A stretch of DNA of 64,000 nt from Octopus bimaculoides (Eukaryota), in NCBI RefSeq assembly GCF_001194135.2, contig NC_069007.1, positions 20,858,418 to 20,922,417 of the forward strand, in the 5' to 3' direction. The notes beneath the pieces were generated by a model. The model had not been told where the DNA came from and made no database searches. It saw nothing but the letters and a program-made list of their open reading frames with translations. Of this stretch, positions 14,622 to 43,080 are shown in pieces (position 1 is the stretch's first letter; every line of letters starts with the position of its first letter). A program made the position numbers and the translations under genes.

Positions 14622-14972
14622 ATTAATTAACCAGGAATTCTTAAAAGCTGTAGAAATGTCTGTTGCTATTTCGGACTTGTATCGAAAGATCGCCGGTTCA
14701 ATTTGTTATTAGATATCACGGGACTTTGTTTACATGCTGTAATTAATTTAGCTAAACCAATTATAATACAAGGTTGGCGGTGTTGTTTGTAATATTGTCC
14801 CTTCTTTAAATTTACGATGTAGCGTAGTTTGTGATGTAAGGAGATATAGAATTAAGCAGATATAGAACACCAACAATGTAACATATAAGTCACTCCTATG
14901 CTATCCACATTGTGACGTTTATCATACTACAATTCAGAATTAAATTAACCAAACTTAACACAATAAGGTAAT

Positions 14973-15050
14973 GTCGGTGAGAATTTCCCCCTCACCTTAT
15001 GTACAACGGTGATATAAATTAATAGTCCCTTACATAATTCAAGACATTCA
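14973..15050 (-). promoter_or_regulatory. MEDV upstream cassette (ZF4), displaced by extra sequence
   Basis: Matches consensus TTAAATTATGTTAGGG..TCACCG(G/T)T..AGGGAAA..CGACA; a second GGCGGTG box at 14776. Confidence 0.6.
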
Positions 15051-16684
15051 TAAAAAGCCTTCCGATGATAAGAATTTAGTCTTTCAAGTGTATCCCAATT
15101 CATGGTAAAGCAAAATGACAATAACGTATCAACGAAAGAGCCTCAGTTTGGTCACTCGACCAGCATGAAATAACAGTCAATTCCCCTCAAACCAGACCCT
15201 TTTGCCTTAGAAAAGAGACGTTCGGCAGTGTCGTCCTATGTATACAAAAATGAGATCGACACGGTTGAAAATGCTTTTCATTTTAGCTCTGAGCGATCAT
15301 GCTAATCTAATAGTAAACAACAACGTTTAACTTTTCCCTCCAACGGTTATAGAGTTGATTTTAGGCACCAATTCGCAGTGTTGTAGACGTCACGCCGTAA
15401 TGACTGTCTCCACCCCCGCCAAATCGTTTTAACAACTGCATGCTTAAACCGATATGCAAATATATATATATATATATATANNNNNNNNNNNNNNNNNNNN
15501 NNNNNNNNNNNNNNNNNNNNNNNNNNNNNNNNNNNNNNNNNNNNNNNNNNNNNNNNNNNNNNNNNNNNNNNNNNNNNNNNNNNNNNNNNNNNNNNNTATA
15601 TAGTGAAGGCAGGCATCAGCCAAATTAATTAAAAACAATGTGAATAAACAAGTATTACATTTAACAGAATATTCTGAATGCTAAAGGGATATTGAGAAAG
15701 AAAATAACATTAACAAATATAGCTTAAACATTTTAATTTAAAATGCATACAATTATTATAAAGAAATATTTCAATTTATATGTAAATTATTTGAACATTT
15801 TGTCGTAAATTTAAGAGGTAATATTTTACATAAATTTCTCATATTTCTGTTTATGAAGCATCTTTTTAAGAAGTCATTTCAGTAACGTTTTTCACCTGTG
15901 TATATTTTACTTAAATTCAAACATGGCTTTTCAACAGAATTAATTTCCCCCTCATTTCAAATTTATAAAGTCATTTTTTAACTTTGTGTCTTTCCAATGA
16001 TAATGAGACAAACAGTGAATGATCTTCCTCCAAGGTATATTCTTGGATTGTAATACTAGAATTTAGAGAATGATGATAGCATATTTCACAGTGAAAGGTT
16101 TCTTCTGTCTGTGATCAGCTATGAATCACATATGAAGATTTACTTAATCCAGTTATTTCCCTTTGATATAGATTTTATCTAATGTATATTCCAGTCGTGG
16201 GCAACCTGCAAAACTTTCTGAATGGCACCCCTAATGAAAACTGGTCTTGAATTTGTTTTAGTAGTGTGGCCCACCTTATGATGAGTTGCATTTCATGCAG
16301 TCTTGCTTCACAAGAACGATTTCCAATGTCTGGTGTGTTCACTTGTCAAAGTTCACAAATAATGATTTCCTAGTTAAAGATGTAAAAGACACCCAGTACA
16401 CTTTGTGGAATGGTTGGCGTCCAGCTGTTGAAACCAAGCCAAAACAGGCTGGAGCCTGGTGCAACTCTCTGCTGGCTTACCAGCTCCAGTTAAACTGTCT
16501 TACCCATGCTAGTGTGGAAAACAGACCCTAAATGAAGATGATTCTCTTTCAAAGAACATATTTGTGGGCCTACATGATACGAATTCAAAAAGAAAGTGAT
16601 TTCTGGTATTTTATGCCCACATATGTTCTCCAATGAATACTTGTTGACACATTATAGGTTTAGATTAAAAAAGAGACACATGTC

Positions 16685-18400
16685 TTATGTTTCACATTTG
16701 AGAGGCTTCCCTCTAGTGTGCAATCGTTCATGTCTTTTTAAAAGACTGCTAGAAATGAAAGATTTCCCACATATTTCACAACAATAGGGTTTTTCTCCCG
16801 TGTGTTTCCGTTTGTGTATGTTTAAATCACTGTTATTAACAAAGGATTTCCCACACACTTCACAGGCACAAGGTTTTTCTCCAGTGTGTCTACGCTTGTG
16901 ACTCATAAGATCAAAATTTCGAGAGAAAGATTTCCCACACATATCACAAAGATATGACTTTTCTCCCGTGTGTATTTGCTTGTGCACAACAAGGGAAGAA
17001 TTTTTACCGAACGACTTGTCACATATATTACAATGGTAAGGTTTCTCTCCTGTATGACTACGTACGTGGATAACAAGTTTCGAATTGTGAGTGAAAGCTT
17101 TTCNNNNNNNNNNNNNNNNNNNNNNNNNNNNNNNNNNNNNNNNNNNNNNNNNNNNNNNNNNNNNNNNNNNNNNNNNNNNNNNNNNNNNNNNNNNNNNNNN
17201 NNNNNNNNNNNNNNNNNNNNNNNNNNNNNNNNNNNNNNNNNNNNNNNNNNNNNNNNNNNNNNNNNNNNNNNNNNNNNNNNNNNNNNNNNNNNNNNNNNNN
17301 NNNNNNNNNNNNNNNNNNNNNNNNNNNNNNNNNNNNNNNNNNNNNNNNNNNNNNNNNNNNNNNNNNNNNNNNNNNNNNNNNNNNNNNNNNNNNNNNNNNN
17401 NNNNNNNNNNNNNNNNNNNNNNNNNNNNNNNNNNNNNNNNNNNNNNNNNNNNNNNNNNNNNNNNNNNNNNNNNNNNNNNNNNNNNNNNNNNNNNNNNNNN
17501 NNNNNNNNNNNNNNNNNNNNNNNNNNNNNNNNNNNNNNNNNNNNNNNNNNNNNNNNNNNNNNNNNNNNNNNNNNNNNNNNNNNNNNNNNNNNNNNNNNNN
17601 NNNNNNNNNNNNNNNNNNNNNNNNNNNNNNNNNNNNNNNNNNNNNNNNNNNNNNNNNNNNNNNNNNNNNNNNNNNNNNNNNNNNNNNNNNNNNNNNNNNN
17701 NNNNNNNNNNNNNNNNNNNNNNNNNNNNNNNNNNNNNNNNNNNNNNNNNNNNNNNNNNNNNNNNNNNNNNNNNNNNNNNNNNNNNNNNNNNNNNNNNNNN
17801 NNNNNNNNNNNNNNNNNNNNNNNNNNNNNNNNNNNNNNNNNNNNNNNNNNNNNNNNNNNNNNNNNNNNNNNNNNNNNNNNNNNNNNNNNNNNNNNNNNNN
17901 NNNNNNNNNNNNNNNNNNNNNNNNNNNNNNNNNNNNNNNNNNNNNNNNNNNNNNNNNNNNNNNNNNNNNNNNNNNNNNNNNNNNNNNNNNNNNNNNNNNN
18001 NNNNNTTTTCACACTGAAACCGCCTCTCGCCAGTATGTATCGTTTTATGTCTTGACAAAATAATATTAGAAACAAAATATTTCCCGCATATATTACAATG
18101 GAAAGGTTTCTCTCCTGTATGACTACGTACGTGGATAACAAGTTTCGAATTGTGAGTGAAAGCTTTTCCACATATTTCACACTGATATGGTTTCTCCTTC
18201 TTATGTATGTCTTTGTGTGTGATTAATTCATGCTCTGAAAAATATGTTTCCTTGCAAATCTCACAGCTATATTCAGTAATATTTCTCTGTCTTGATCTCT
18301 GTTCAGTGAATTTTTCATTGCGTGCAAGTTTCTCACAGTTGTATGTTTGTGAAGCTGAATCTACATCGTTAGAAGATCCCAAGTGATTAACATCCTCCAT
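16685..18400 (-). CDS. ZF5: C2H2 zinc-finger protein interrupted by a 903-N gap; 7 complete fingers visible (MEDV family)
   Basis: MEDV ATG at 18400 (another in-frame ATG at 18472). Fingers on both sides of gap 17104-18006; continuity across the gap is assumed, not seen. Confidence 0.8.
   Translation of the reverse strand: MEDVNHLGSSNDVDSASQTYNCEKLARNEKFTEQRSRQRNITEYSCEICKETYFSEHELITHKDIHKKEKPYQCEICGKAFTHNSKLVIHVRSHTGEKPFHCNICGKYFVSNIILSRHKTIHTGERRFQCEXXXXXXXXXXXXXXXXXXXXXXXXXXXXXXXXXXXXXXXXXXXXXXXXXXXXXXXXXXXXXXXXXXXXXXXXXXXXXXXXXXXXXXXXXXXXXXXXXXXXXXXXXXXXXXXXXXXXXXXXXXXXXXXXXXXXXXXXXXXXXXXXXXXXXXXXXXXXXXXXXXXXXXXXXXXXXXXXXXXXXXXXXXXXXXXXXXXXXXXXXXXXXXXXXXXXXXXXXXXXXXXXXXXXXXXXXXXXXXXXXXXXXXXXXXXXXXXXXXXXXXXXXXXXXXXXXXXXXXXXXXXXXXXXXXXXXXXXXXXXXXKAFTHNSKLVIHVRSHTGEKPYHCNICDKSFGKNSSLVVHKQIHTGEKSYLCDMCGKSFSRNFDLMSHKRRHTGEKPCACEVCGKSFVNNSDLNIHKRKHTGEKPYCCEICGKSFISSSLLKRHERLHTRGKPLKCET
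17104..18006. other. Assembly gap (903 N); other gaps at 3122-3224, 15481-15596, 50069-50141 and 51792-51801
   Basis: Runs of N. Confidence 1.
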
Positions 18401-18519
18401 AATTAATGACCAGGAATTCTTAAAAGCTGCAGAGGTGTATGTTAATATTAATCTAAAATAATTCAGTTTCATTTAACTGTTTACATCATTTTATGGAATT
18501 TGCTGAACTAATTACAATA

Positions 18520-18610
18520 GCAAGTTGGCGGTGTCGCTAATAGTTTCCCCTTGCTATAATTATTCCGGTGTTTTAAGTTAAAAGTTCCTAATATAGTTTA
18601 ATCGATTCAT
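18520..18610 (-). promoter_or_regulatory. MEDV upstream cassette (ZF5)
   Basis: Sense strand: TTAAACTATATTAGGAAC..ACACCGGA..AGGGGAAAC..CGACACCGCC. Confidence 0.65.
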
Positions 18611-19017
18611 ATACAGTTCCAATTCGATCTGTTTGATTCTTCAGTTTCATCCAGTCTGCTATTAGTTCTGATGAGAAGAACTCTGATTGAAGAAGAAAAA
18701 ACAAAACAAACTTGATGAATATCGTTGTTACATTTTGAAAGCAACGAGAAAGATATTCGGAAAAAAATTCGCCTGGCAGATGCCAGCAGCGGAATTCTGT
18801 TTTAAGCATCGCATATAACCCAGAAAAAGACCCTTAAATGTGTTTACGGGGAGAACGATATTGAAAAACATAATAACGTCAGAACCACACCTGGAAATGG
18901 CACCATCTTTTGGCTTACCAACCTCTTGTCAAACCATCCAACCCATGTCATCTTGGAAAACAGACGTTAAATGATGATGTTTTGCCAGTCATAATTAATG
19001 AGATTGTCTTATAAACT

Positions 19018-19237
19018 TTAAACCTTTCATTACTGTATTTATTTTGAGATGCTCTGTGTTTCTTTCAATTAATTTTAAATATAACAAAGAATTTAGTAAA
19101 ATAACTTAGCTATCATTCAGCTAGTGTTAAGAACATAAATTGTGACTAAGGTTTGGTGGAAGATTTTAATTCAAAACTTATGAAAACAAGACATTTGTAC
19201 TACAGAGCCAGAGGTGGGTTGGTAACAAAAGGGTTAA
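19018..19237. mobile_element. Second TTAA MITE family (fragment also at about 35703-35765)
   Basis: TTAAACCTTTC ... AAAAGGGTTAA. Confidence 0.65.
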
Positions 19238-19574
19238 AGACAAATAAAATCAAAGAGATCTTTCTGCAGGGTGTATCTGTTAATTACAAGATAACAAACA
19301 AGAGGGAATGAGTTCAAACATATTTTGATAATTTTCATGTAATTCACACGTTTTACAATGCTAACTTTAGTCGGATACATCAAGGAGCTGTCATGTTTTC
19401 AGTGAGCATAAAGACTTCTCCTCTCTGCCTTATCTTATCTCTGTTCAGTTGTTCCCCAGCACCAGAGGGTTGTCTCCTCCCCCCCTCCTGCCACAAAAGG
19501 AAATTAACGAAAGAGAGGATACTAGAACAAGAACCTGAGAGCTGGTAGAAAACAGTTATACAGGGGAGAAACAA

Positions 19575-19790
19575 GCAGCACCTTGGGCAAGTGTCTCCTA
19601 CCATAGCCTTGTGAGAGGATTTGATAGACGATGCTGGTGTGTTTATGTCCCCGTAACTTAGCAGTTCGGCAAAAGAATCCGATAGAATAAGTACTAGGCT
19701 TACAAAAAATAAGTCCTGGGGTTGATTTACTCGACTAAAGGTGGTGTTCCAGTATGGCCACAGTCAAATGACTGAAACGAGTAAAAGAGT
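19575..19790 (+). mobile_element. SINE family D; other fragments at about 60-285 (-), 8620-8790, 8983-9046, 42840-42990, 46580-46700 (-) and 49270-49490
   Basis: CACCTTGGGCAAGTGTC..CCGTAACTTAGCAGTTCGGCAAAAG..AATAAGTCCTGGGG..CAAATGACTGAAAC tail shared among the copies. Confidence 0.75.
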
Positions 19791-19875
19791 TAAGATTTCT
19801 CTGAAATGAGATTCCATTTCTATATTAAAAGATGAGAATACAATGAGATTGAGTTCCAATATAATTACACTAAGA

Positions 19876-20094: not shown

Positions 20095-20154
20095 ATGGTC
20101 TCCAGTGTTTACTTGTTACTGGTCTATAAATTTAGACTTACAAGCAAAAACCTC

Positions 20155-21930
20155 TCATGTCTCACATTTTAAAGACTTCCCTCCAGTGTGTATGCGTACA
20201 TGTCTCTTTAAAAGACTGCTTGTAATAAACGATTTCCCACATATTTCACAGTGAAACAGCTTTTCTCCCGTGTGTTTCCGTTTGTGTATGTTTAAATCAC
20301 TGTTATTAACAAAAGATTTCCCACACACTTCACAGGCACAAGGTTTTTCTCCAGTGTGTCTACGCTTGTGACTCATAAGATCAAAATTTCGAGAGAAAGA
20401 TTTCCCACACATATCACAAAGATATGACTTTTCTCCCGTGTGTATTTGCTTGTGCACAACAAGGGAAGAATTTTTACAGAACGACTTGTCACATATATCA
20501 CAATGGTAAGGTTTCTCTCCTGTATGTATTTGATTGTGACGTTTTAAATCGTGGTTTTTAAGAAAAGCTTTCCCGCAGATTTCACAGTGATAAGGTTTCT
20601 CTCCAGTGTGTATTTTTTTGTGTGCTTTTAATAAGCTATTAGTCAGAAAAGATTTCCCACAAATATCACAAGAATAAGGATTTTCACCAGCATGCATCAT
20701 TTTATGAACTACAAGTTGTGAATTCACATAGAACGATTTCCCACATATATCACAGTGGAAAGGTTTCTCTCCAGTGTGGATTCGTTCATGTGTTTTTAAA
20801 TCACTGTTATTTACAAACGATTTGCCACAAATTTCACAATGATGTGGTAATTCTCCAGTGTGTCTACGTTTGTGAACTACGAGATTAGAATTATCAGAGA
20901 AAGATTTGCCACATATGTCACAGTGAAACGGGTTTTCTCCAGTGTGTATCCTACTATGTCTTTTCAAATTACTGCTATAGAGAAAAGACTTGCCACAAAT
21001 TTCACAACTGAAGGGTTTTTCACCACTATGTATTCGTTCATGAGTTTTTAAATCACTGTTATTTACATAAGATTTGCCACATACTTCGCACACATACGGT
21101 TTTTCTCCTGAGTGCCGACGTTGGTGGATTGTAAGCTTAGCATTTTCAATAAAAGACTTCCCGCATATTTCACAATGAAACGGTTTTTCTCCAGTGTGTC
21201 TACGTTCATGGATGACAAGTTTCAAATTATTTATAAAACTTTTTCCACATATTTCACAGTGTAACAATTTCTCTCCAGTGTGCAGCCTTTTGTGAATTGC
21301 CAAACTACTATTGGAGACAAAACACTTCCCACAAACATTACAATTGCATGGTTTCTCTCCAGTATGACTACGTATATGAATGACAAGTTTCGAATTATTA
21401 ATAAATGATTTTCCACATATTTCACATTGAAATGGTCTCTCACCAGTATGTATCGTCTTATGACGTGACAAAATAATATTAGAAACAAAATATTTCCCGC
21501 ATATATTACAATGGAAAGGTTTCTCTCCGGTGTGACTGCGTACGTGGATAACAAGACTGGCATTCTGAGTGAAAGATTTTCCGCATATTTCACACTGATA
21601 TGGTTTTTCTCCAGTGTGTATCCTTTTGTGAATTGCAAGATGAGAATTATTTACAAACGATTTCCCACATATCTCACAGTGAAATGGTTTCTCTCCTGTA
21701 TGTGTTCTTGTGTGTGTTGTTAGAAAAACGTTCGATGGGAAAGATTTCCCGCATATTTCACAGTGGTAGGGTTTTTCTGTCTTGTGTATTTCTTTGTGTG
21801 ATAATAATTCCTCTTCCGACGAGAATATTTTACTACAAATCTCACAGTTTTTTTCAGTAATATTGCTATGAAATGATTTTCCTTCAGCAAATGTTACGTT
21901 GGAAGTGTCCAAGTCCTTAACGTCTTCCAT
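20155..21930 (-). CDS. ZF6: C2H2 zinc-finger protein, 20 fingers (MEDV family)
   Basis: ORF MEDVKDLDTSN...; ends CET*. Confidence 0.93.
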   Translation of the reverse strand: MEDVKDLDTSNVTFAEGKSFHSNITEKNCEICSKIFSSEEELLSHKEIHKTEKPYHCEICGKSFPSNVFLTTHTRTHTGEKPFHCEICGKSFVNNSHLAIHKRIHTGEKPYQCEICGKSFTQNASLVIHVRSHTGEKPFHCNICGKYFVSNIILSRHKTIHTGERPFQCEICGKSFINNSKLVIHIRSHTGEKPCNCNVCGKCFVSNSSLAIHKRLHTGEKLLHCEICGKSFINNLKLVIHERRHTGEKPFHCEICGKSFIENAKLTIHQRRHSGEKPYVCEVCGKSYVNNSDLKTHERIHSGEKPFSCEICGKSFLYSSNLKRHSRIHTGENPFHCDICGKSFSDNSNLVVHKRRHTGELPHHCEICGKSFVNNSDLKTHERIHTGEKPFHCDICGKSFYVNSQLVVHKMMHAGENPYSCDICGKSFLTNSLLKAHKKIHTGEKPYHCEICGKAFLKNHDLKRHNQIHTGEKPYHCDICDKSFCKNSSLVVHKQIHTGEKSYLCDMCGKSFSRNFDLMSHKRRHTGEKPCACEVCGKSFVNNSDLNIHKRKHTGEKLFHCEICGKSFITSSLLKRHVRIHTGGKSLKCET

Positions 21931-22065
21931 ATTAATTAACCAGGAATTCTTAAAAGCTCTAGAAATATCTGTGATTATAATCTATAACGGTCCAGTTTCT
22001 TGTCTTAGATGTAATGAGACAATGTTTACATGATCTAATTAACTCACCTGAAGTAATTACAAAGA

Positions 22066-22155
22066 TACGGCGGTGTCGTTCATATATTTTCCCCTCACCT
22101 CAATGATACCGGCGACAAAATTGAAAGATGCCTAACATAATTTAAAACATTCTGA
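22066..22155 (-). promoter_or_regulatory. MEDV upstream cassette (ZF6)
   Basis: Sense strand: TTAAATTATGTTAGGC..TCGCCGGT..AGGGGAAAAA..CGACACCGCC. Confidence 0.65.
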
Positions 22156-22629
22156 AATGCTAGAAAATTTCTTCGCATTGTTCTGTATATTTGTGTTGTT
22201 GTTGATGCCCGATCAATAATGTATATATGTATAATACATTTCAATTGTTTCATTTATTTTAAATAGTTTATTTCCTCACTTCAAATAGCGAAGAAGTGCC
22301 CTAATTTTTAGACAGCAAATAAGTCAAAATCTTCCTTTTATTGTACTACAGAAACAAAATCTTTCCCATGTCGCTTTGTTTGACAAAGTGAAATACAGTT
22401 GGCGTCTTAAAAAAGCTAATACAGCAAGCCCTGCTAACTGAACAGTAACCTTTTATTTTTTTTTCATTACATACAAACATTTGACTGCTATTTCTAGCAA
22501 GTCAAATGATAACTTAAGAGGTCCTTCGTTGATACGTATAAGATATTTATGTGGATGTTGTATTTTAGATTCACAATGGATTAGACACAATGCAAAGAAC
22601 AAACTGATATAACTGAATGTGATGCTGGA

Positions 22630-22710
22630 TGTAATAAATTGTATTAAGGACAGTTTAATTACGTCACCGGTATAATTGCGGTTTGGGAAAGTTTCTCAAC
22701 GTCGCGAACT
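22630..22710 (+). promoter_or_regulatory. MEDV upstream cassette (ZF7)
   Basis: TAAATTGTATTAAGGAC..TCACCGGT..GGGAAAG..CAACGTCGCG; more diverged than the others. Confidence 0.55.
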
Positions 22711-22836
22711 TGTCATCTTCATAATTAATTTAATTTATATCATGTTAGCGAAATCTCATTACTCAGAAACACTGAACCATAATGGATTATAGATACTGAC
22801 ATTTCTTAGCTGTTTACGAATTCCCTATCGGTTAAA

Positions 22837-24246
22837 ATGGAAGACGTTAATCAGTTGGACACTTCTGGTAAGACAATTCTTAACGATGTAGATTCGGTTG
22901 TGCAAACATACGATGACGAGAAACCTTTATATGGTGAAACAGTTATTGAACAGAAATCAATACAGAGAAATATTGGTGAATATAGTTGTGAGGTTTGTAA
23001 GAAAACATTTCCTTCACAACACGAAGTCTTCACACACAAGGAAACACACAAGAAGAAGTTAAAACCATATCGGTGTGAAATTTGCGGCAGATCATTCAAG
23101 CAGAATTCTCATCTTGTAGTTCACAAAAGAATTCATACTGGGGAAAAGCCTTTTGGCTGTGAAATATGCGGGAAATCATTCATTAAGAAACTGAATCTTG
23201 TCATTCACCTCCGTAGCCATACAGGCGAAAAACCCTTCCACTGTAAAATATGTGGCAAATCTTTCGTCTCCAAGAGTAATTTAGCAAGGCATGAAAGAAT
23301 ACACACTGGAGAAAATCCGTTAAACTGTGAAATATGTGGGATATCTTTTCATCATATTAATGATTTAACTACGCACAAAGGAAAGCACAATGGAAAAGAA
23401 CCATTTCACTGTGAAATATGTGAGAAATCTTTCGTCTCTAATAATCATTTAATAAGGCACCGAAGGATACACACTGGAGAAAAACCTTCTTCTTGTGATA
23501 TTTGTGGGAAATCTTTTCTTGATAGAAGTAATTTAACAACTCACAAATTAATACACAGTGGAGAGAAACGGTTTCAGTGCAAAATGTGTGGAAAATCTTT
23601 TACCCAAAATAATCATCTTGTAGTTCATAAAAGAAGACATACAGGAGAAAAGCCTTATCACTGTGAAATCTGTGGGAAGGCCTTTGTATCTAACAGTGAT
23701 TTAAAAACACATAAAATAACGCATACTGGAGAAAAACCTTTTCATTGCGAAACGTGTGGAAAATGCTTTACTCAGAAGTCCAGCCTTGTTGTTCACAGAA
23801 AAATACACACTGGAGAAAAGCTGTTTCATTGTGAAGTGTGTGGAAAGTCTTTCATTAATAATTTTAATTTTGTTATCCACGTCCGTAGTCACACCGGAGA
23901 AAAACCTTTCCATTGTGAAATTTGTGGAAAGTCGTTTGTCTGTAAAAGTAAGTTAGTGACACACATAAGAACACACACTGGAGAAAAACCGTTTCACTGT
24001 GAAATCTGTGGGAAATTTTTTCTTGATAGTAGTAATCTAACAATACACATAAGAATACATACTGGAGAAAAGCCTTATCGTTGTAAAACTTGTGGGAAAT
24101 CGTTTCTTAATAGTAGTAATCTAACGACTCACAAAAGAATACACACTGGAGAGAAACCTTTTCAGTGCGAAATTTGTGGAAGATCTTTCCGTGACAGCCG
24201 TAATTTAACACCTCACAAAAGAACACATTTGAGAAAAAAAGTTTAA
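22837..24246 (+). CDS. ZF7: C2H2 zinc-finger protein, 15 fingers (MEDV family)
   Basis: ORF MEDVNQLDTSG...; the last finger is unit 1 of the downstream 80-bp tandem repeat. Confidence 0.93.
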   Translation: MEDVNQLDTSGKTILNDVDSVVQTYDDEKPLYGETVIEQKSIQRNIGEYSCEVCKKTFPSQHEVFTHKETHKKKLKPYRCEICGRSFKQNSHLVVHKRIHTGEKPFGCEICGKSFIKKLNLVIHLRSHTGEKPFHCKICGKSFVSKSNLARHERIHTGENPLNCEICGISFHHINDLTTHKGKHNGKEPFHCEICEKSFVSNNHLIRHRRIHTGEKPSSCDICGKSFLDRSNLTTHKLIHSGEKRFQCKMCGKSFTQNNHLVVHKRRHTGEKPYHCEICGKAFVSNSDLKTHKITHTGEKPFHCETCGKCFTQKSSLVVHRKIHTGEKLFHCEVCGKSFINNFNFVIHVRSHTGEKPFHCEICGKSFVCKSKLVTHIRTHTGEKPFHCEICGKFFLDSSNLTIHIRIHTGEKPYRCKTCGKSFLNSSNLTTHKRIHTGEKPFQCEICGRSFRDSRNLTPHKRTHLRKKV

Positions 24247-24735
24247 CTGAAATTTGTGGAGAATCTTTCCGTGACAGCCGTAATTTAACACCTCACAAAA
24301 GAACACATTTGAGAAAAAAAGTTTAACTGAAATTTGTGGAGAATCTTTCCGTGATAGCCGTAATTTAACACCTCACAAAAGAACACATTTGAGAAAAAAA
24401 GTTTAACTGAAATTTGTGGAGAATCTTTCCGTGATAGCCGTAATTTAACACCTCACAAAAGAACACATTTGAGGAAAAAAGTTTAACTGAAATTTGTGGA
24501 AAATCTTTTTGTGGTAGCTGTAACTTAACAAGTCACAAAAGAACACGTGAGAAGAAAAAAATTGTTTAACTAAGAAATTTGTGGAAGATATTTTCAAATC
24601 AGCCGTAACTTAACATCTTACAAAAGAACACATGTGAGAAAAAAAGTTTAACAAAGAAATTTGTGGAAAATCTTATTGTGACAGCTGTAACTTAATACCT
24701 CACAAAAGAGCACATTTAAGAAATTTGTGGGAAAA
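24169..24735 (+). repeat. 80-bp minisatellite derived from the last ZF7 finger (about 7 units)
   Basis: GAAATTTGTGG recurs at 24169, 24249, 24329, 24409, 24489, then about 24574, 24656 and 24720; the first four units are almost identical. Confidence 0.95.
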
Positions 24736-24949
24736 TTTGACTCTGAAATCCCATTTTGTAGTTTACAAAAAAAATTAAAAATACATACCAAGAAACCTCT
24801 ACCTCATCACATCGACACAGTATTTACTTCACCAACTCGAAGCAAGTTGGTAATATCATGTAATGGATTTCCTTGTGTATACAACACATAAATGCAAATG
24901 TTGATTAAATAAATTAATTAAACCACAATCCGATGCTTTCCAATTGTTT

Positions 24950-26160: not shown

Positions 26161-26484
26161 TATGTTATATATAAAAATAAGATTATACATAATGTAAATC
26201 ATGATTAGAACATCAACCAACCAACGGAGATATGTATATAAATATATCTGAATATCTACATGTTTATTCGTGTAATAGTTCAGCAGGGGATGGGGCTAGT
26301 CGATTACATCAACCCCACTGCTGAACCAGTATTCGTTTCATCGACCTCGAAAGGAGAAATAAAAGGCAAAGTCGGTGGAATTTGAACTCAGAACGTAAAG
26401 ACGAGCAAAATGCCGCATTTTGCCTGGCGCGCTAACGATTCTGCTAGATCACCGCCTTAATCAACTTGATTACAAATGTTTGTG

Positions 26485-26570
26485 ATTGTATTAAATTATA
26501 TGAGGGAAATTCAACTAACGACGCCGTTGTCATTAAAAGAAGGGAAAAATTATCAACGACACCGCGCACT
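26485..26570 (+). promoter_or_regulatory. MEDV upstream cassette (ZF8)
   Basis: TTAAATTATATGAGGGA..ACGCCGTT..AGGGAAAAA..CGACACCGC. Confidence 0.65.
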
Positions 26571-26701
26571 TTGTATGGGAGAAATTGATTTGCTGAAATC
26601 GTGTTAAACATTGTGTTAGGATATCTAAGAGAAGCAACGGAACCGTAATACATTATATTTATAGACATTTGTGAACCTGTAAGCATTCCTGGTTAATTAG
26701 T

Positions 26702-30035: not shown

Positions 30036-32201
30036 GTTTATTTATATATCTATATAATTATGATGATATAGAACATGGAGACTTGTTCATTCTCAAAATT
30101 TAATTTCTTTTATTTTACAATTTTATACATCATATTATTTATGGTCTTGATGACATACGTGTGTTTCTACTGCATGTATTACGGGCAGTTGCAGATGCAA
30201 TCGGGCATGATTTTTGGTGCAGCTTCTTCAGAATCTCTCCGTTTGGCTTATATATCATTATCATTTAACGTCCACCTTCCATGCTAGCATGGGTGGGACA
30301 GTTTGACAGTGACTGTTTTGGCAGGATTTTTACAGCTGGATGCTCTTCCTCACGTCAACCAGTTAACAGTGCAGTTTCTACCCTATTGCTGGTATCAGCT
30401 GGATGTTGAGCTGAGACACACCTGTCCAGCTTGTGCCATCATGAAAAATGGATACAAGACTAAATGATGGAACAGGTGCCACATAAAAAGCATCCAGTCC
30501 ACACAGTAAAGTGGTTGGCATCCAGCTGTAAAAACCATACCAAAACAGACACATTAGCCAGCTGTGGTCTTCTACCTGGCTGGCTCCTCCTGTCAAACCA
30601 TTCCACTCATGCCAGCATGGAAATCGGACATTAAGTGATAATGACGATGATAAAAATTACTTTCCAAATTTTTTTTTTTAATACATTTGAAAACACTAGA
30701 GACATTTTTAAATAAAATATGTTGGTGATATAAAGGAAAAACTAGTAACCAAGTTTTAAAAACAGAAATTAAGGTTTATTTGGATAAAAATGTTGAATTT
30801 CAATTAGATAACATTATGTAGGCAACAACGTTCACTTGTGATGTTTCAAATTCAATGAAGGCTGTAACATCATAAATTACCAGTCTCTGAGGATAGAGGG
30901 GCAAGCAATAAAAAAACCATATTCATAAATAAAATAGAAACACAAGCAATACTTTCATTATTATACAAGTCCTGTATTTTCCAGCATATCAGTCGACATA
31001 GCAGAGAATGTAAATATATAAACATCTAAACACCACCAGGTATCTTTCCAAGTCTTGCTGCATTTCACAAGGAATTTTTGGTCCTACAAAGTAGTCTTGG
31101 TGTAGGAGTCATCCTACCTTTTCTGGTTGTAAACAGGGATGGAGTTAATGCTTGTGGGGCCCTGGGCACTTCAAGTTCAGTGGGTCTCTCATACACAAAT
31201 TAAAATCCATGAAAAATTATCAAATTTACATCTCAAAATCAGTCTATTGCATTTAATTGAAATTGATTAATTAGTAGTTCTTAGGAAATTTAAATGCATC
31301 TGTCAGTGCAAAATGTCATCTCGACAAAGTACTGCAAGTTCCATCAATTTACCATTCTATACTACAATATTATCAAAACAACTTTCTTTTTATACTTTGC
31401 ATCTGAAAAATCTTTAATGAATTTCTCAAACTGTATATCATCATCATCGGTTAACATCCGCTTTCCATGCTAGCATGGGTTGGACGATTTGACTGCAGAC
31501 TGGCGAACCAGATGGCTGCACCAGGCTCCAATCTGATCTGGCAGAGTTTCTACAGCAGGATGCCCTTCCTAACTGCTCTCAACATCGAAAAGGCACAGAA
31601 TGTTTATTCTTTCATGGGTCACTGGAGATAATTCTTTATCAGATCCAATTTACTGAATGACTGTCCTCCTGAATAACTATTAGACATCAAGCTGATATAT
31701 ATATTCTAAGAACTACATCAACAGCTGGAAAACTATGAGCAAGCCCTTCATTACCGATTCAAAGAGCTTCTTCAAATGAGGTGAAATATGACCCAAGCTT
31801 ACAAAAGGCTGTAAACTACAATTTCTGCTATGAACACCTTACTAAAACCACAGGAAAAATCGATGAAACATCAGGTCTCTCTCAGCCAGAAATACTGCAA
31901 TGACAACAAAATACCAGGTCCCAGCTAGAAATACTGCAACGACCACGATACAATACTTCAGTCCAGTCGTTCTTGGAACTTTGGGTTCATAATTGCAGAA
32001 ATTTCCATGTGTAGAACACAAATTCGCAAACATTTTCCTGAAAATTCCAAAAAATAAAAAGTGATGATGGGTTACTTAAACCAGAAATTCCACTCATTTC
32101 CCCATATATTTGACAATAATAGAAGTTCCATCACCACAAACTTTATATTCTTTTGAGTGTTGTTAAATCATTAATGACAAATGATTTCTCCACATATTTC
32201 G

Positions 32202-33350: not shown

Positions 33351-33473
33351 ATTAGCTGAACTGGAATTCTTGCAAGCTATAGAATTATCTCTAACTCTAA
33401 TCAATTACAGAGCTGTTTCTAGTATTAAATATAATGGATATGCTTCAACTAGATATGATCACATTAGTCGAAG

Positions 33474-33562
33474 ATGGCGGTGTCGGTAAAAAAATTTTCC
33501 TGCTTCTCAGTGTTACCGGTGATATACACTTTAGTTCGCCTCATATAATTCAATACAATCAG
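33474..33562 (-). promoter_or_regulatory. MEDV upstream cassette (ZF9)
   Basis: Sense strand: TTGAATTATATGAGGCG..TCACCGGT..AGGAAAA..CGACACCGCC. Confidence 0.65.
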
Positions 33563-33584
33563 AAAATGTTTCAGTTTTATTAAC

Positions 33585-33652
33585 GTATTCGCTTCTGGTT
33601 TGATAAATTTGATAAATCTGGTGTATTCGCTTCTGGTTTGATAAATTTGATA
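33585..33652 (+). repeat. 30-bp direct repeat, period 38
   Basis: GTATTCGCTTCTGGTTTGATAAATTTGATA at 33585 and 33623. Confidence 0.95.
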
Positions 33653-33660
33653 GTGTTTCT

Positions 33661-33742
33661 GGTGTGTTAAATTATGTTAGGGACCTTTATCATCTGTCAC
33701 CGATGTTATTCAGGAGAGAACAGTTTTTCAGTGACACCGTAC
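33661..33742 (+). promoter_or_regulatory. MEDV upstream cassette (ZF10)
   Basis: TTAAATTATGTTAGGGAC..TCACCGAT..AGGAGAGAA..TGACACCGT. Confidence 0.65.
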
Positions 33743-33885
33743 TCTTAGTATTTTTATAATTAGTTCAGTTAAATTAATTAAATTACGTAAAGAAAGTTTC
33801 ATGATATCGAAGACATAACACTTAACTATAATAGATTATAGCCACAAACATTTCTACAGCTTTTAAGAATCCCTGTTCAATTAAT

Positions 33886-36125: not shown

Positions 36126-37689
36126 ACATGGCTGAGAAATGGAGCCGCAAATGCAGAATATAAGTTAGTCCTACAGCGAAAAATGTTCCTGAAGGTCAGC
36201 AATGGTCTTCCTAAGTCACGAGTGGACAGCCATCATCATATATATGTGCGTATATATGTATATATAGATGTGTGTGTGTGTGTATTAGCGTGTGGAAGAT
36301 TTAAGCGTCTTCCGTCTTGTCCAAATCTCGGGGATTTTGGCTTCGAAAATCTTCAGTCTCTTTCAACCTTTCACGGTGATTAGAGGCTAGGGAATGTGTG
36401 CACCAGGGGATGTACCCAGGCAGTTGAAGTGAGAGTCATCTTCACCTTGTTTTCAGTGTTTGTGGGGGGATGTTTTATGCACCTTTAAGTTCTTAAACAC
36501 CCAATGTAACGTGCTGGTTGGTCGTATAACATAGTTACAAGGTGTACGGTAGTTTCACTGTAACCGTATGAACTTTTAGCCAGGCGATTCCAGTACAGGA
36601 AACCTGGGGGGCCCAACCAGAAACATTCCTCACTCTTCGTACATTTCCGCAAAATAATTTGTCTTGAAGAATTCTGTGACAATAAATGGAAGTAACAATA
36701 GCGTTAAATAATCAAAACGAGGAACACGAAATAATTGTCATTTAACATATAATTTATGCGTATGTCAACAATATAACTATGGACATGGTGAATATTTTAA
36801 TAAAGATTTGGTTTGTTGCTTTCAAAACGTTTGCGCTTCTTCTCAAGTTACTTCTATAATACTGGACCCTAGCAGCGGGAAATTTAGACAGTGTCACGTG
36901 ACAACTTGCTGGGGGTAGCCTGCTGGAGCCTAGCAGCAGGTATAAAAAAGGGGAATTTGACAAGGCAGTCAGTCGGAAGCTGACACTCGTTGATGCTACT
37001 TCGAAGAGGCCAGGGAATAGAAGAAAGAAGACATGCACCCAGCACCAGAGCTGAAGACACCTCCGAAGGGGGGGGGGGGCTGCCACGTCAAAACGGCAGA
37101 GGAGTAGGGGCCGAAACCGGACGTGGTTCCTCCTGATGATGTCTTGAGCTAACTGGATCCTATAAAGGAGCTGTTGTGGTAGAAGACCACGAAACATGGT
37201 TAAAATTCCTGTATTATTCATTCAGTGAACATGGTGAGCATTTGGCGGAGGTAAAGAATACGTACTTCACCTGTTTTCGGCAGAACAAAAACCCAAACCC
37301 CAAACACCAGGTGTACGTATTTACTTTCGCCGAGCTTTTTAATAAAAAATACAAGTTTTGCAATTAAACTGTTTGAGCATTTCAGATAATTGTAACAAAG
37401 CAACATTTATTCTTCATTCGATGTTCGATATACTGCATATGTAGGGTGAGTACTTTCATTAAAAATGTTTGTTGCTCAAAATTGGTGAGAAACACAAGAG
37501 AATCAAATCTGCTCGTCTTTTTAATGGGAAGTTTGGTATAATCGGAACGGGAATTAGCTGCTATGTCTAGCGGGTGAAGCAATCCTATTGAGGTTCCATC
37601 GTTAAGCAATATTTTACTGGATGATAGTTTTTCTTTTTTAATCAATGTTGGATACAGTGGAACAGAGTAAATTGATAAAATTGATGATT

Positions 37690-37775
37690 CTGAAGGTGTT
37701 AAATTATGTTAGGGAACTTTTATTTATGACACCGGTGTCAGTGACAAGAGGAAAATATTTCGAACAACACCGTTG
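37690..37775 (+). promoter_or_regulatory. MEDV upstream cassette (ZF11)
   Basis: TTAAATTATGTTAGGGAAC..ACACCGGT..AGAGGAAAA..CAACACCGT. Confidence 0.65.
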
Positions 37776-37893
37776 ATTAGGAACCTTTATTATTTGGTTC
37801 GATTAATTTAATTATAATTAATAAACAACTAAACCACAGCAACTAAGACATGAAACTGAAACATAAGAGATTATAGTAATCGGGTGAATTAAC

Positions 37894-38949: not shown

Positions 38950-39691
38950 TTATGAAATATAGCAGGAATCTTCCTTTCATTTGTGTAATTGCATAAAAAC
39001 TCCTACATTGTGAAATCTTTTGTCTCGAAAGGGATATCGCATGTCACAACTGCCTCCTCCCCACCAAAAGAAACATAACTGACACATCATCATCATTTGA
39101 TGTCTGTTTTCCATCCTGGCATGGATTGGATGGCTTGACAGGATCTTTCAAGGCCAGGGGCCACACCAGATTCCATAGTCTGTTTTTTGGTTGCCTTCTA
39201 CAGTTGGATGCCCTTCACGATGCCAATCACTTTACAGCGTGTACTGGGTGCTTTTTATGCAGCTCTATCACCAATGCTTTTTATGTGGCACCATTTCCAG
39301 TGGTTTTACATGGCACCAGCACCAGTGCTTTTAATGTGGCACCTGCACCCAAGAGAAAAATTCATTCAGTGTAAAATATGTTCTTGAGCAAAAATAAAAA
39401 AATAGTTGCCTGTACAGCTCAAGAATAACAATTGCAGGCAAAACTAATGGACAAAATCTGCTGCATCTTATTTTTCTGTGTTCATTACCATGTTACTAAG
39501 AATCTGCTTGAGAGGACATTTGACCTATTTCCTGTAATAGTAGGAATTTGGTGTAATGGAATTCAAAGTGACCCTCAAACTGCATATAAGGTGTTGCAAT
39601 CTTTATAAAATCAAAAAACTGAACTGTCACAAAATCTTGTTTTTGAGAAATAATTCTGATATTATTGTGTAAACTACTACATTTGCCAGCG

Positions 39692-39915
39692 TATGTGAGG
39701 AAGTACTGAAAAGTTCCTTGCTTTAATGGTATCACGAAAGGCCTGGTTGGAGGCTCAACCTTTCAAGTTCTTTTACAGGGCATAAAGAAACTGAAGAACC
39801 TCTAATATGTGTGTAAACCTAAGCGAAGAATATGGTGAATAAAATTGTAATTAACTGAATCTTCTCCATTTTCTTTTACCCAAACCCAGGAACTTTTTAG
39901 CACCCCCCCCTCATA
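39692..39915. mobile_element. Mariner-type MITE or deleted element
   Basis: Inverted ends TGAGG..TACTGAAAAGTTCC / GGAACTTTTTAGCACCCC..TCA with TA flanks; partial copy at about 49735-49790. Confidence 0.6.
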
Positions 39916-40096
39916 TGATGCATGTTTTACAGGGATATTTTGTGGAAGAAATATAATTAATGTTTGGTCATACACCCATTGAAGGATACTTCGATGTGCT
40001 TTTGTTGGGGGGAAATGTCTGATTCTATGCATGTAAATACAATATTATGACTATTACAGGAATAAAAAATGAAACCATAAATTTATCAAATAAACT

Positions 40097-40149
40097 ATGT
40101 TATAGGAGTACCATGTTATAGGAGTACCATGTTGTAGGAGTACCATGTT
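40097..40149 (+). repeat. 16-bp tandem repeat, 3.3 copies
   Basis: ATGTT(A/G)TAGGAGTACC. Confidence 0.95.
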
Positions 40150-40227
40150 TCAACTTTATCTTCTTTCAACTCAACTCTATAATTGTTTATATTAACAGGG
40201 GCAATAAACACTGAAGATGTTCAGAAA

Positions 40228-40395
40228 ACAGATTCCATCTCATGCCAGGGGAAGAAACTAGAAGTAGTTGATAGCTTCCGCTACCTAGGTGACCAAGTCT
40301 GTAGTGGGGGGTGGATGTTCTAAGAGCATTGCCACTAGAATAAGAATAGCCTGGGGAAAGTTCAGAAAACTCCTACCTCTGTTGGTAACAAAGAG
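40228..40395 (+). mobile_element. RTE-clade LINE reverse-transcriptase fragment
   Basis: Translates KLEVVDSFRYLGDQVCSGGGCSKSIATRIRIAWGKFRKLLPLL. Confidence 0.8.
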
Positions 40396-40890
40396 AAGTG
40401 GGTGTGCTTACACTGTAAAACCAGGAAAAAAAAAAAAGGCACGATCAGGCTCAAACTTCAACCACCGAGGACAACTCTGCCTTTCATCCTTTCAGGGTCA
40501 ATAAATTAAGTACCAGTGTCAATTTACTCCCCCTCCCCCACCCCCACAAAAAAACTTCTGGTCTTATACCAAAATTAATAAGAATTTTTATTGTTACATT
40601 TTATTATTGAAGAACATGTTGGAATTTGTTAGCACAGCGGGCAAAACGATTTGAGGTATTTCTTTCTGGTTTTTACGTTCTGAGTTCAAATTCTGATGAA
40701 GTTGATTTTTGCTTTTCATCCTTTCGAGGTCAATAAAATAATTTCGGCCTTTTGGCTAAGATCAAAGTGTAGTCAAGTTCTAGGATCAATGCAATCGACT
40801 GGTCAGCTCTCCTCAAAATTGCTGGTCTTGAAACCACTATACGGACAGAAGGGAGTGGTAGAATACAAAATTAGATTTGCACAAGATTTC

Positions 40891-41973
40891 TCACATTTCG
40901 CATTTAAAAGTCTCTCCTCCAATATGTATTTCTTTGTGTCTTTTTAAGCGACTGCTAGTGATAAAAGATTTTCCACAAATATCACAATGATAAGGCTTTT
41001 CTCCAGTATGTATTGTTTTGTGAACTGCAAGATGGGAATTTTGAGTGAAAGATTTCCCACATATTTCACAGTGGAAAGGTTTCTCTCCAGTATGGATTCG
41101 TTTATGTGTTGTTAAATTACTACTGTCCATAAAACATTCGCCACACGTATCACAGTGAAACGGATTTTCTCCAGTGTGAATTCTTTTGTGTTTCGTTAAA
41201 TCACCATTGGTGACAAAAGACTTTCCACATACTTCACAGTGAAACGGTTTTTCTCCCGTATGTATTTTTTCGTGTCTTACTAAATTACTTTTAGAGACGA
41301 AAGACTTGTCACATGTTCCACAATGATAAGGTTTCTCTCCGGTATGACTACGTATATGGACAACAAGACTCGAGTACTGAATGAAAGATTCCCCACATAT
41401 TTCACAGTGGCGCGGTTTTTCTCCAGTATGTATCCTTTTGTGACTTACTAAATAACTATTGTGCACAAAAGATTTTCCACAGACATCGCAGCGAAAGGGT
41501 TTCTCTCCAGTATGTATAATTTTATGCGTTGTTAAGTGACCATTTGTGATAAAAGATTTCCCACACATTTCACAGTGATATGGTTTTTCTCCAGTGTGAC
41601 TACGTACGTGAATTACAAGGTGAGAATTACTTATGAAAGATTTACCACATATTTTGCAGTGATACCGTTTTCCTCCGCTGTGACTACGTTTGTGTCTTGC
41701 TAATTGACTCTCAGAGACGAAGGATCTCCCACATATTTCACAGTAAGGTTTTTCTGGCTTGTGTACGTTACTATGTGTAAATAATTCATAGTCAGAAGGG
41801 AATGCTTTCTTACAGATGTCACAGCTATAGTTTGTAATATTTCTACGTAATGATCTTTGTTCAGTAAATGTTTCGTTATATAAAGCTTTCTTACCATTGA
41901 ATGTCTGTGTGATTGAATCTATATCGTTAAAAACAGTTGTATTAGAAGTATCCAACTGATTAACGTCTTCCAT
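40891..41973 (-). CDS. ZF12: C2H2 zinc-finger protein, 11 fingers (MEDV family)
   Basis: ORF MEDVNQLDTSN...; ends CEM*. Confidence 0.93.
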   Translation of the reverse strand: MEDVNQLDTSNTTVFNDIDSITQTFNGKKALYNETFTEQRSLRRNITNYSCDICKKAFPSDYELFTHSNVHKPEKPYCEICGRSFVSESQLARHKRSHSGGKRYHCKICGKSFISNSHLVIHVRSHTGEKPYHCEMCGKSFITNGHLTTHKIIHTGEKPFRCDVCGKSFVHNSYLVSHKRIHTGEKPRHCEICGESFIQYSSLVVHIRSHTGEKPYHCGTCDKSFVSKSNLVRHEKIHTGEKPFHCEVCGKSFVTNGDLTKHKRIHTGENPFHCDTCGECFMDSSNLTTHKRIHTGEKPFHCEICGKSFTQNSHLAVHKTIHTGEKPYHCDICGKSFITSSRLKRHKEIHIGGETFKCEM

Positions 41974-42119
41974 GTTAATTAACCAGGAATACTTACAATC
42001 TGTAGAAATGCCTGTGAGTATAATCTATTATGGTTCAATTTCTTGCCTTAAATATCATAGGAATTCGTTTGTTTAAATGATATAATTAATTTCTTTGGAC
42101 TAATTACAAAGATACTAAA

Positions 42120-42205
42120 GCGGCGGTGACGTTGAAAATTTTCCCTCGCCTTAACAACACCGGTGATAGAAAAGAAGGATCCCTAACACAATTTAATACA
42201 TTCAC
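42120..42205 (-). promoter_or_regulatory. MEDV upstream cassette (ZF12)
   Basis: Sense strand: TTAAATTGTGTTAGGGA..TCACCGGT..AGGGAAAA..CGTCACCGCC. Confidence 0.65.
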
Positions 42206-43080
42206 AAACGTATTGTATGTAACCCACGGTAAATATATAAATTAAAAACAGCACCCAGAAAAAATTCAAAATAGCTACCACATATCAATGAATGAAATTC
42301 AACGTGATTGTTTGATGTCTTAGAAACAGTAGTCAAATCACCCTCGAATCACAGCCTACTAAAAAGTGAAGACCTCCTTTGACAGTGGTGGTAGTTCGAG
42401 ACAAAAATAAATAAATAAAATGGACTGTCGCAGAAAAAACTCTATAATTATAGATCAATTCGATCAGGATCTAAAGAACTATTCTCTGATTTATATTTCG
42501 TTCAAAACGAACTATCATTAACGGAATATCTATACAAGTGTGCAGACCACCACCGACTTTGTTTCGTCATAACTTTCAGAGGATGGGAATTTTTTAATGT
42601 AATTCTCTACAAGTATCTTGTAAAAAAATGGTGGGAATAGAAAACACTTCATTTCACGTTGCCCCAGTCCTCCTTCGATCAGTGGGGAATGTTAGCCTGC
42701 TCGCCTCGCTAGCAGAGTGGCGTCGTTTGAAGGTTAAAACAACGCAAAAGCACATTGTGACCAGCGATGTGCAATAACATCTGACAGCCTGGTCGGACAC
42801 ATAATAACGTGATGTGGGTGTGTGATCCGACCACCAGCACCATCACTTGACAACCGGTGCTGGTTTGTTTACTCGTAACTTAGCATACCGTATCTGACTT
42901 TGAAGAAAACTATGTCGATTTGTTCGACTGACATACTTCAAAGCAGTAGACCAATATGGTTGCAGTTCAATAACTGAATCAACTAAAACAATGCTTATAA
43001 CTATAACCAAATCAATAACGGCGAAATCGATCATTCATAAAGATACTCCTCACTCTTCCTTCCACGTTACTGCATGTCTT

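Follow-up and report, generated by a model that had tools for sequence, protein, structure and literature searches.

Cephalopod genomes contain very large lineage-specific expansions of C2H2 zinc-finger (ZNF) genes, the regulation of which is essentially unstudied. The 64,000-nucleotide stretch of the Octopus bimaculoides genome that we analyzed (contig NC_069007.1, positions 20,858,418 to 20,922,417 of the forward strand; hereafter the window) is densely packed with C2H2 ZNF genes of two kinds, and we describe here a block of about 240 bp that the genes of one kind share at their 5' ends. The window is AT-rich, with a G+C content of 36% and a CpG observed/expected ratio of 0.62. The first subfamily comprises 10 genes with a single open reading frame (ORF) each, the products of which begin with the residues MEDV or with one of the N-terminal variants MDRV, MDSV and MNMEDV. 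Their start codons are located at positions 14621(-), 18400(-), 21930(-), 22837(+), 26702(+), 33350(-), 33886(+), 37894(+), 41973(-) and 56456(-), and we refer to these genes in that order as ZF4 to ZF13. In the protein alignment ZF10, which starts with MDSV, carries an N-terminal deletion of 17 codons. The second subfamily comprises 7 genes with CDICGKSFS fingers, located at 710, 4991, 10407(-), 44132, 49948, 51463 and 60995(-). A splice acceptor and exon start, TTTCAG/RAYATCRGA, is conserved 300-400 bp before the first finger in all seven of them, and these genes are therefore multi-exon with promoters elsewhere, unlike the MEDV-type genes.

A preliminary description of this DNA had drawn attention to a CpG-retaining cassette of about 90 bp that stands, in gene orientation, upstream of nine MEDV-type start codons. 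To define its distribution, we searched the window with the motif TTAAATTATGTTAGGGA, which belongs to the distal end of the cassette (box A, see below). Allowing up to 3 mismatches, we obtained 8 matches where 0.5 were expected, a number that was reached in 0 of 100 shuffles. A profile was also built from 8 aligned window copies and used with nhmmer at E <= 10, the profile of the full block having 234 positions. The cassette profile recovered exactly 10 copies in the window, all of them gene-oriented and upstream of a MEDV-type ATG. All nine cassettes described before are among these; the tenth lies upstream of ZF13, outside the range considered at the time, and the earlier count was thus incomplete. 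Accordingly, the cassette is present in 10/10 MEDV-type genes and in 0/7 genes of the second ZNF subfamily. Four further matches were found upstream of MEDV-type relatives elsewhere (loci L001 to L004), which brings the octopus DNA covered to about 152 kb (the window plus 88 kb around the relatives). All 14 matches in these 152 kb are gene-oriented and upstream of MEDV-type genes, and at E <= 10 the same DNA contained no orphan copies and no matches away from ZNF genes. The figure of 14 family members applies to these 152 kb and is not a genome-wide count.

This distribution bears on the explanation that the cassette is, or derives from, an interspersed repeat, such as a short interspersed element (SINE), a miniature inverted-repeat transposable element (MITE) or a fragment of a long terminal repeat (LTR) element, that came to lie beside the genes by chance. 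Octopus genomes are repeat-rich, and SINE-like repeats of 160 bp occur in the same intergenic regions, but a repeat of this kind would hardly have all of its matches at MEDV-type genes in gene orientation. Moreover, the block is continuous with the start codon, consistent terminal inverted repeats flanking it were not found, no Rfam family matched it at the gathering score, and ARAGORN reported no tRNA in it. We regard a chance repeat as extremely improbable, and the transposon origin that had been suggested for the cassette was not borne out, as dispersed copies are absent from the 152 kb.

Alignment of the copies revealed that the cassette is the distal third (boxes A-D) of a larger block that can be aligned from about -240 to the ATG. 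The conserved columns of this block are clustered into boxes (variance of 8-column window means, p = 0.007), which read as follows:

Box A: TGTATTAAATTATGTTAGGGA
Box B: TCACCGGTRT
Box C: GAGGGAAAA
Box D: CGACACCGCC
Box E1: TTTGTAATTAGTTCA..AATTAATTA
Box E2: ATCATGTAAACA
Box F: AAACTGAACCRTAATAGATTATAG
Box G: CATTTCTACAGCTTTTAAGAATTCCTGGTTAATTAAT-ATG

Conservation is highest in the CACCG of box B, the successive positions of which are kept in 14, 12, 14, 14 and 13 of the 14 copies. Its CpG is retained in 13 of them and lost only at L002 from O. sinensis, where the sequence is CACCTG. Boxes A and B are separated by 28 bp, to within 1 nt in 14/14 copies (29 in ZF9, and a 1-nt alignment gap in L002), despite the fact that the 14 nt between the two boxes are poorly conserved; the spacing between boxes B and D is 37-39 bp. 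The persistence of CpG in the cassette, which had been noted before, was confirmed by an observed/expected ratio of 1.39, compared to 0.66 in the proximal part of the block and the much lower value of the whole window. In 8/8 aligned window copies CpG is kept in two columns, one within CACCGG and the other within CACCGC. The cassette does not represent a CpG island, for which at least 200 bp, a G+C content of at least 50% and an observed/expected ratio of at least 0.6 are demanded: it has about 90 bp and a G+C content of 37%, and its ratio of 1.39 derives from 2-3 conserved CpGs. CpG dinucleotides are hypermutable, and together the rigid spacing between boxes A and B and the retention of CpG favour constraint as judged from the alignment.

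At the proximal end, an A at -3 and a G at +4 are conserved around the start codon. The ATG lies inside a 22-bp near-palindrome, TTCCTGGTTAATTAAyATGGAA, which is centred on TTAATTAA (41965-41992, 21925-21946 and the same site in ZF4) and might serve for protein binding or form a small hairpin around the AUG. Several other interpretations of the block were tried and rejected. It is not a coding exon: ZF11 and ZF13 have an in-frame stop at -9, ZF7 and ZF8 have one at about -30, and the frequent indels are not multiples of three. An intron within the short form, with GTAAAC as donor and TTTCTACAG as acceptor, was dismissed because not all paralogues have kept the GT and AG, and an upstream ORF running from ATG to TAA in box E2 exists in only 3/9 genes. 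RNAalifold predicted 0 pairs and 0 kcal/mol for 12 copies, so that no consensus RNA structure was found in this set. Resemblances to transcription factor sites, all of them merely putative, include presumed sites for Grainyhead (AACCGGTT), ETS, NFAT (GGAAAA), forkhead (GTAAACA), homeodomain (TAATTA), MEIS (TGTCA), CTCF and YY1; the TAATTA cores and the GTAAACA in box E are likewise only presumed to be homeodomain-like and forkhead-like.

The copies differ in the distance between the cassette and the start codon. In ZF5 to ZF12 the first position of box A lies between -195 and -223 and the last position of box D between about -126 and -148, which agrees with the 125-150 bp given in the preliminary description, and the cassette of ZF4, described there as displaced, was located at about -420. 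Across all family members the distance between cassette and ATG ranges from about 130 bp to about 1.8 kb, with sequence and orientation kept. There is also a second, long form of the block, in which a spacer of several hundred bp separates boxes A-E1 from boxes E2-G. The individual blocks of the window are:

14622 to 14809, minus strand: ZF4 proximal copy, boxes C-G (model 57-233), reaching ATG 14621; nhmmer E=3.1e-25
14810 to 14938, minus strand: ZF4 intervening DNA, homologous by alignment to the long-form spacer of ZF13, L002 and L003 over its first ~150 bp
14939 to 15054, minus strand: ZF4 distal copy, boxes A-E1 (model 3-127); cassette 15054-14972; nhmmer E=7.8e-15, cassette E=3.6e-15
18401 to 18614, minus strand: ZF5 5' block; cassette 18614-18527; ATG 18400; nhmmer E=1.8e-43; no N before the ATG
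21931 to 22157, minus strand: ZF6 5' block, short form; cassette 22157-22069; ATG 21930; nhmmer E=3.2e-61; donor-like CAG/GTGAGT in box E1
22621 to 22836, plus strand: ZF7 5' block; cassette 22621-22705; ATG 22837; nhmmer E=1.6e-44; head-to-head with ZF6
26477 to 26701, plus strand: ZF8 5' block; cassette 26477-26565; ATG 26702; nhmmer E=1.2e-50
33351 to 33565, minus strand: ZF9 5' block; cassette 33565-33476; ATG 33350; nhmmer E=1.2e-45
33655 to 33885, plus strand: ZF10 5' block; cassette 33655-33740; ATG 33886; nhmmer E=2.2e-56
37686 to 37893, plus strand: ZF11 5' block; cassette 37686-37773; ATG 37894; nhmmer E=5.1e-42, model 2-194 only, as a ~25-bp deletion removes the TTTCTACAGCTTTTAAGAATT box
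41974 to 42209, minus strand: ZF12 5' block, short form; cassette 42209-42122; boxes E-G 42119-41975; ATG 41973; nhmmer block E=2.6e-60, cassette E=2.9e-22, proximal E=2.2e-32
56457 to 56560, minus strand: ZF13 proximal boxes E2-G, directly before ATG 56456 (MNMEDV...), from alignments
56480 to 57186, minus strand: ZF13 long spacer from box E1 to the proximal boxes, starting with donor-like AAG/GTAAGA and ending with CTCCAG/C; candidate intron in the 5' untranslated region (5'UTR)
57248 to 57320, minus strand: ZF13 cassette, boxes A-C with box D degenerate, ~800 bp upstream of the ATG; nhmmer cassette E=4.5e-8

Neither of the two assembly gaps in this region touches a cassette or an interval between cassette and ATG. 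One gap (15481-15596) lies about 430 bp beyond the distal cassette of ZF4. The other (17104-18005, 902 N) interrupts the ZF5 coding region about 395 bp past the ATG, and the ZF5 stretch from 18614 to 18400 is uninterrupted. Two gene pairs are arranged head-to-head: ZF6 and ZF7 have 906 bp between their ATGs, and ZF9 and ZF10 have 535 bp between their ATGs and only about 90 bp between their back-to-back cassettes. A direct repeat of about 38 bp (ATTTATCAAACCAGAAGCGAATAC...) is contained in these 90 bp plus adjoining DNA (33476-33655).

Relatives of the MEDV N-terminal region were recovered only from octopuses, namely as RefSeq/UniProt entries of O. bimaculoides and O. sinensis and as one Logan contig. 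They were obtained with profiles of the N-terminal region only, the search with full-length ZNF proteins being dominated by generic vertebrate ZNFs; the proteins P0195, P0269, P0241 and P0140 from the representative search were rejected as unrelated ZNFs. The block is present upstream of 4/4 relatives in gene orientation, even though the N-terminal proteins are only about 50% identical, and these are the sole cassette matches in the 88 kb concerned. L001 (Logan SRR11869391) has the shortened form, with TCACCGGTG 115 bp before the ATG and a conserved box G. L002 (O. sinensis CM016873.1) and L003 (O. bimaculoides CM046628.1) have the long form, with boxes E2-G next to the ATG and boxes A-E1 at a distance of 660-850 bp upstream, and L004 (O. 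sinensis CM016886.1) has a contiguous block. Between the L004 block and the ATG of XP_029652431.1 we observed a 1.6-kb tandem repeat (1400-3000 of L004) made up of 5 or more units of about 300 bp, and the coding sequence (CDS) is frame-shifted; judged from these features, this member of the family may have been disabled when its block was separated from it.

ZF13 shares the long form with L002 and L003. The spacers of about 600-700 bp between boxes E1 and E2 are mutually alignable among these three genes (identity 0.54, compared to 0.43 for shuffled sequences), and the displacement of the ZF4 cassette results from the retention of about 150 bp of this spacer, after which boxes C-E1 occur again, so that ZF4 has these boxes twice. 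Because the long spacers can be aligned and ZF4 keeps a fragment of one, the long form appears to be old, and the compact arrangement was probably derived from it by deletion. Donor-like sites follow box E1 in ZF13 (AAG/GTAAGA), L002 (AAG/GTGAGC) and ZF6 (CAG/GTGAGT), and AG dinucleotides precede box G.

Taken together, the distribution and anatomy of the block suggest that it is a subfamily-specific proximal promoter plus 5' leader of the octopus MEDV C2H2 ZNF genes, which we consider probable, though well short of certain. Transcription would probably start inside the cassette, near box B, with the AT-rich box A at a fixed distance upstream in a geometry resembling that of a TATA box and an initiator (TAAATTAT of box A lies about 31 nt upstream of the TCA of box B), and boxes C to G would form the 5' leader. 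In the older long form, an intron of about 600-700 bp between boxes A-E1 and E2-G would be removed by splicing, and the deletion of this spacer in most window genes would have brought the cassette to -130/-225. A common block would provide the paralogues with a common basal regulatory input, and the surviving duplicates would all have needed it for expression. The fact that homology starts sharply at about -240, with other intergenic DNA and 3' flanks decayed, would be explained if the duplicates had to carry the block. The idea of the preliminary description that a portable promoter or 5'UTR module co-duplicates with the gene is thus the best-supported reading of the presence in all MEDV-type genes and in none of the second subfamily, the constant orientation, the lack of orphans, the persistence at diverged relatives, the fixed spacing of boxes A and B, the retained CpGs and the shortage of sense-strand ATGs past box B, with the modification that the true unit is larger than the cassette.

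The placement of the transcription start draws on upstream start codons. From box B to the start codon, the 8 short-form genes contain 13 sense-strand ATGs compared to 26.4 expected (P ~0.0015, shuffling), the complementary triplet CAT occurring 31 times in the same region. The box A region contains 14 ATGs compared to 8.7 expected, and the depletion is strongest from box B to E1. If the depletion comes from selection against upstream starts in a 5' leader, it places the transcription start near box B. The short distances between the head-to-head genes ZF9/ZF10 and ZF6/ZF7 also leave little room for transcription starts outside the blocks.

Several observations weigh against a promoter and leader under selection, and those that concern conservation would also be expected if the block were a passive, co-duplicated flank, that is, the still-alignable part of the duplication unit, kept by descent or occasional conversion of 5' ends rather than by selection and devoid of sequence-specific function except perhaps in the last few tens of bp before the ATG. 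BLAST identities among paralogues from about -240 to the ATG amount to 66-75%, and the block overall has a pairwise identity of 0.645 with 11.6% gaps. The cassette is no more conserved than the remainder of the block (gap-free identity 0.65 vs 0.64). Across 14 genes its identity is 0.60, compared to 0.64 for third positions when the first 75 codons are taken; over the first 46 codons, third positions (0.74) and four-fold sites (0.81) exceed it. In the long-form trio, the cassette (0.58) is about as conserved as the spacer (0.52-0.62). The expectation that the cassette alone would stand out from neighbouring 5' sequence therefore failed, per-site constraint is modest overall, and part of the cassette similarity may reflect plain shared descent. 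Recombination or conversion does occur in the cluster, as ZF5 and ZF6 are 89% identical in their 3' halves and 71% in their blocks. A passive flank nevertheless fits poorly with other properties of the block. Homology ends at the same position of about -240 in all paralogues: further upstream the identity drops to 0.41, with 36% gaps, which is about what shuffled sequences give (0.40), and the 3' flanks of the paralogues show no positional homology. The surrounding DNA is thus unalignable, as had been stated, beyond -240, but not between cassette and ATG, where it aligns as well as the cassette itself. The block is better conserved than third positions are, both in the clearly orthologous first finger (0.53-0.60, with 0.46 at four-fold sites) and in later fingers (0.41-0.54). 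The spacing between boxes A and B is free of indels in 12/14 copies, in contrast to the gap frequency elsewhere in the block, the hypermutable CpG of box B is almost always kept, conserved columns are clustered, and the cassette persists at the relatives with divergent N-terminal proteins. Lastly, no pair of blocks is more than 77% identical, which argues against recent conversion. The evidence for selective constraint on the block is therefore mixed as far as alignments can tell, and we consider it rather unlikely that the block is nothing but a passive flank.

The conservation of N-terminal codons deserves a separate remark. Third positions in this part of the CDS (0.74) match first positions (0.70) and are far above the third positions of the fingers (0.41-0.60), and this covers the first ~140 nt of the MEDV CDSs (e.g. 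14621-14480 and 18400-18260). It could be due to constraint on DNA or RNA, to conversion of 5' ends or to the comparison of non-orthologous fingers. As nucleotide conservation continues for about 140 nt into the CDS, the conserved unit is really a module that covers about 380 bp of the 5' end, between -240 and about +140.

The remaining points against a promoter with a leader concern the start of transcription. The statistic on ATG depletion treats homologous sequences as independent, the candidate first exon of L003 holds 4 ATGs, and the ZF13 spacer is itself ATG-poor. Boxes A and B match the TATA and initiator consensuses only loosely, and the donor and acceptor positions are not conserved across paralogues. 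Finally, the RefSeq model XP_052833736.1 (O. bimaculoides, L003 3001-14333) uses an acceptor that lies inside box F, 50 nt before the ATG; if this model is right, the cassette is intronic. Its first exon (MSLIVTFCITNIGG...) precedes the cassette by about 1.3 kb and the MENV ATG by 2.1 kb. This model would suit a regulatory element in an upstream or intronic position, such as an enhancer, an insulator or an alternative-promoter module, that is not a core promoter and acts at variable distance, the first exon lying further upstream or transcription starting in boxes F-G. The variable distance to the ATG, at which sequence and orientation are kept, fits such an element, and so do the proximal boxes (TAATAGATTATAG ... 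TTTCTACAG), which equal the cassette in conservation and lie directly next to the ATG in every case, and the presumed homeodomain-like and forkhead-like cores of box E. Less easily reconciled with it are the head-to-head pairs, where an upstream exon could hardly be accommodated, the cassettes of ZF9 and ZF10 being 90 bp apart, and the depletion of sense ATGs from box B onward and not in box A, which fits transcription through boxes C-G. Furthermore, the upstream exon of XP_052833736.1 is transposon-like and may be a chimeric prediction. We regard a distal or intronic element as unlikely, though with a chance that should be kept in mind.

The geometry of the cassette also lends itself to a different role, which would be compatible with location in a promoter: the cassette may serve as a docking platform for the poly-ZNF proteins of the cluster itself, resulting in auto- or cross-regulation. 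Circumstantially, the two subsites at a rigid 28 bp with non-conserved filler span about 45 bp, the footprint expected of about 15 fingers, and the discussion section of PMC10547256 mentions that KRAB-ZNFs often target other KZNF genes. Conversely, the finger arrays of the paralogues differ greatly in number and sequence, and core-promoter geometry explains the spacing equally well. Such docking is in our view very improbable. A broader proposal is that the cassette is no ordinary promoter but a dedicated control platform coordinating an octopus-specific ZNF subfamily. Box A, 28 bp, the CACCG of box B, about 38 bp and the CACCG of box D could then form an array with methylation-sensitive CpGs, which could be read by a multi-finger protein, possibly encoded in the cluster, for auto- or cross-regulation or promoter choice; by analogy, this could resemble the control of protocadherins by CTCF and the conserved sequence element (CSE), evolved independently in cephalopods. 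We judge this combination of features to be improbable as a whole.

Further observations concern individual genes and repeats. The 3' halves of ZF5 and ZF6 that share 89% identity (16623-17056 and 20095-20526) include about 60 bp past the stop codon, their N-termini being as divergent (only about 71% identical) as their 5' blocks; this contrast points to gene conversion or a chimeric duplicate. The length of the gap within ZF5 is only an estimate, so the two halves of this gene cannot be assigned to one reading frame. A tandem array with a period of 80 bp (23962-24723, about 9 copies, 83-87% matches) extends from the last fingers of ZF7 past the stop codon. Its unit is the zinc-finger repeat shortened from 84 to 80 bp, so that the array is out of frame; by its sequence it amounts to a finger-derived satellite. 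SINE-like repeats of about 140-170 bp are located at 19621-19790, 31437-31573 and 8186-8402, with many copies in L002 of O. sinensis (88-94% identity) and with about 87% identity in L003 of O. bimaculoides.

A survey of the cephalopod C2H2 expansion from 2025 predicts switched regulation in tandem duplicates (PMC12513265), and its text does not contain the words promoter, motif or upstream; the block seems not to have been described before in the literature that we found. A shared upstream block is the expected kind of feature for duplicated genes, and if it is only an ordinary shared promoter, it will help annotation without being surprising in principle. It does, however, provide a concrete and testable cis-element common to one subfamily in at least 2-3 octopus species, and box A followed at 28 bp by CACCGG is a simple sequence tag for finding and annotating the 5' ends of MEDV genes. 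This is of practical use as current gene models fuse or truncate these genes, examples being XP_052833736.1 and XP_029645730.2, the latter of which spans 53 kb (L002 3001-56618); the public models of this family look wrong at their 5' ends.

The consensus sequences of core-promoter elements are TATAWAWR for the TATA box and YYANWYY or TCAGTY for the initiator, and the downstream promoter element (DPE) is located at +28 to +33. The block resembles a TATA-plus-initiator promoter in that an AT-rich element precedes a conserved TCA at a rigid spacing with free filler in between. It differs in that the matches to these consensuses are weak and in that box D would lie at about +34 to +41, which is not the position of a DPE. 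A closer parallel may be found in the clustered protocadherin genes, where a CSE stands upstream of each variable exon, contains CpG, is associated with methylation, is bound by CTCF and depends on spacing (PMC3333863). Like the CSE, the octopus cassette is a short, CpG-containing and gene-oriented motif upstream of every tandem paralogue within otherwise diverged promoters, and the spacing of the CSE to a neighbouring element is functionally critical. On the other hand, the CSE has about 22 bp and is CTCF-bound, whereas the octopus unit has about 240 bp and at least 7 boxes; by eye, the sequences of the CSE and the CTCF motif have nothing in common with it beyond a CACC..G..G fragment. The octopus genes are, moreover, complete single-ORF ZNF genes and not alternative first exons, and stochastic promoter choice is not implied. 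The second parallel is with the FiNZ-ZNF genes on zebrafish chromosome 4, for which the passages of PMC10547256 that cite Hadzhiev et al. (2019, 2023) report a shared promoter architecture, a TATA box in 'sharp peak' genes and co-expression. According to these passages, the zebrafish genes, like the MEDV-type genes, form a lineage-specific, massively duplicated C2H2-ZNF subfamily defined by a short novel N-terminal region. The two subfamilies belong to different phyla and differ in that region (MEDV... as opposed to the FiNZ domain), and the zebrafish promoters were, in the same account, defined by cap analysis of gene expression (CAGE) and expression data, whereas the octopus block is known from sequence conservation alone. 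By analogy, the octopus block would work like the protocadherin CSE and the FiNZ promoters, with one module carried by each member of a tandem family and no sequence common to the three systems.

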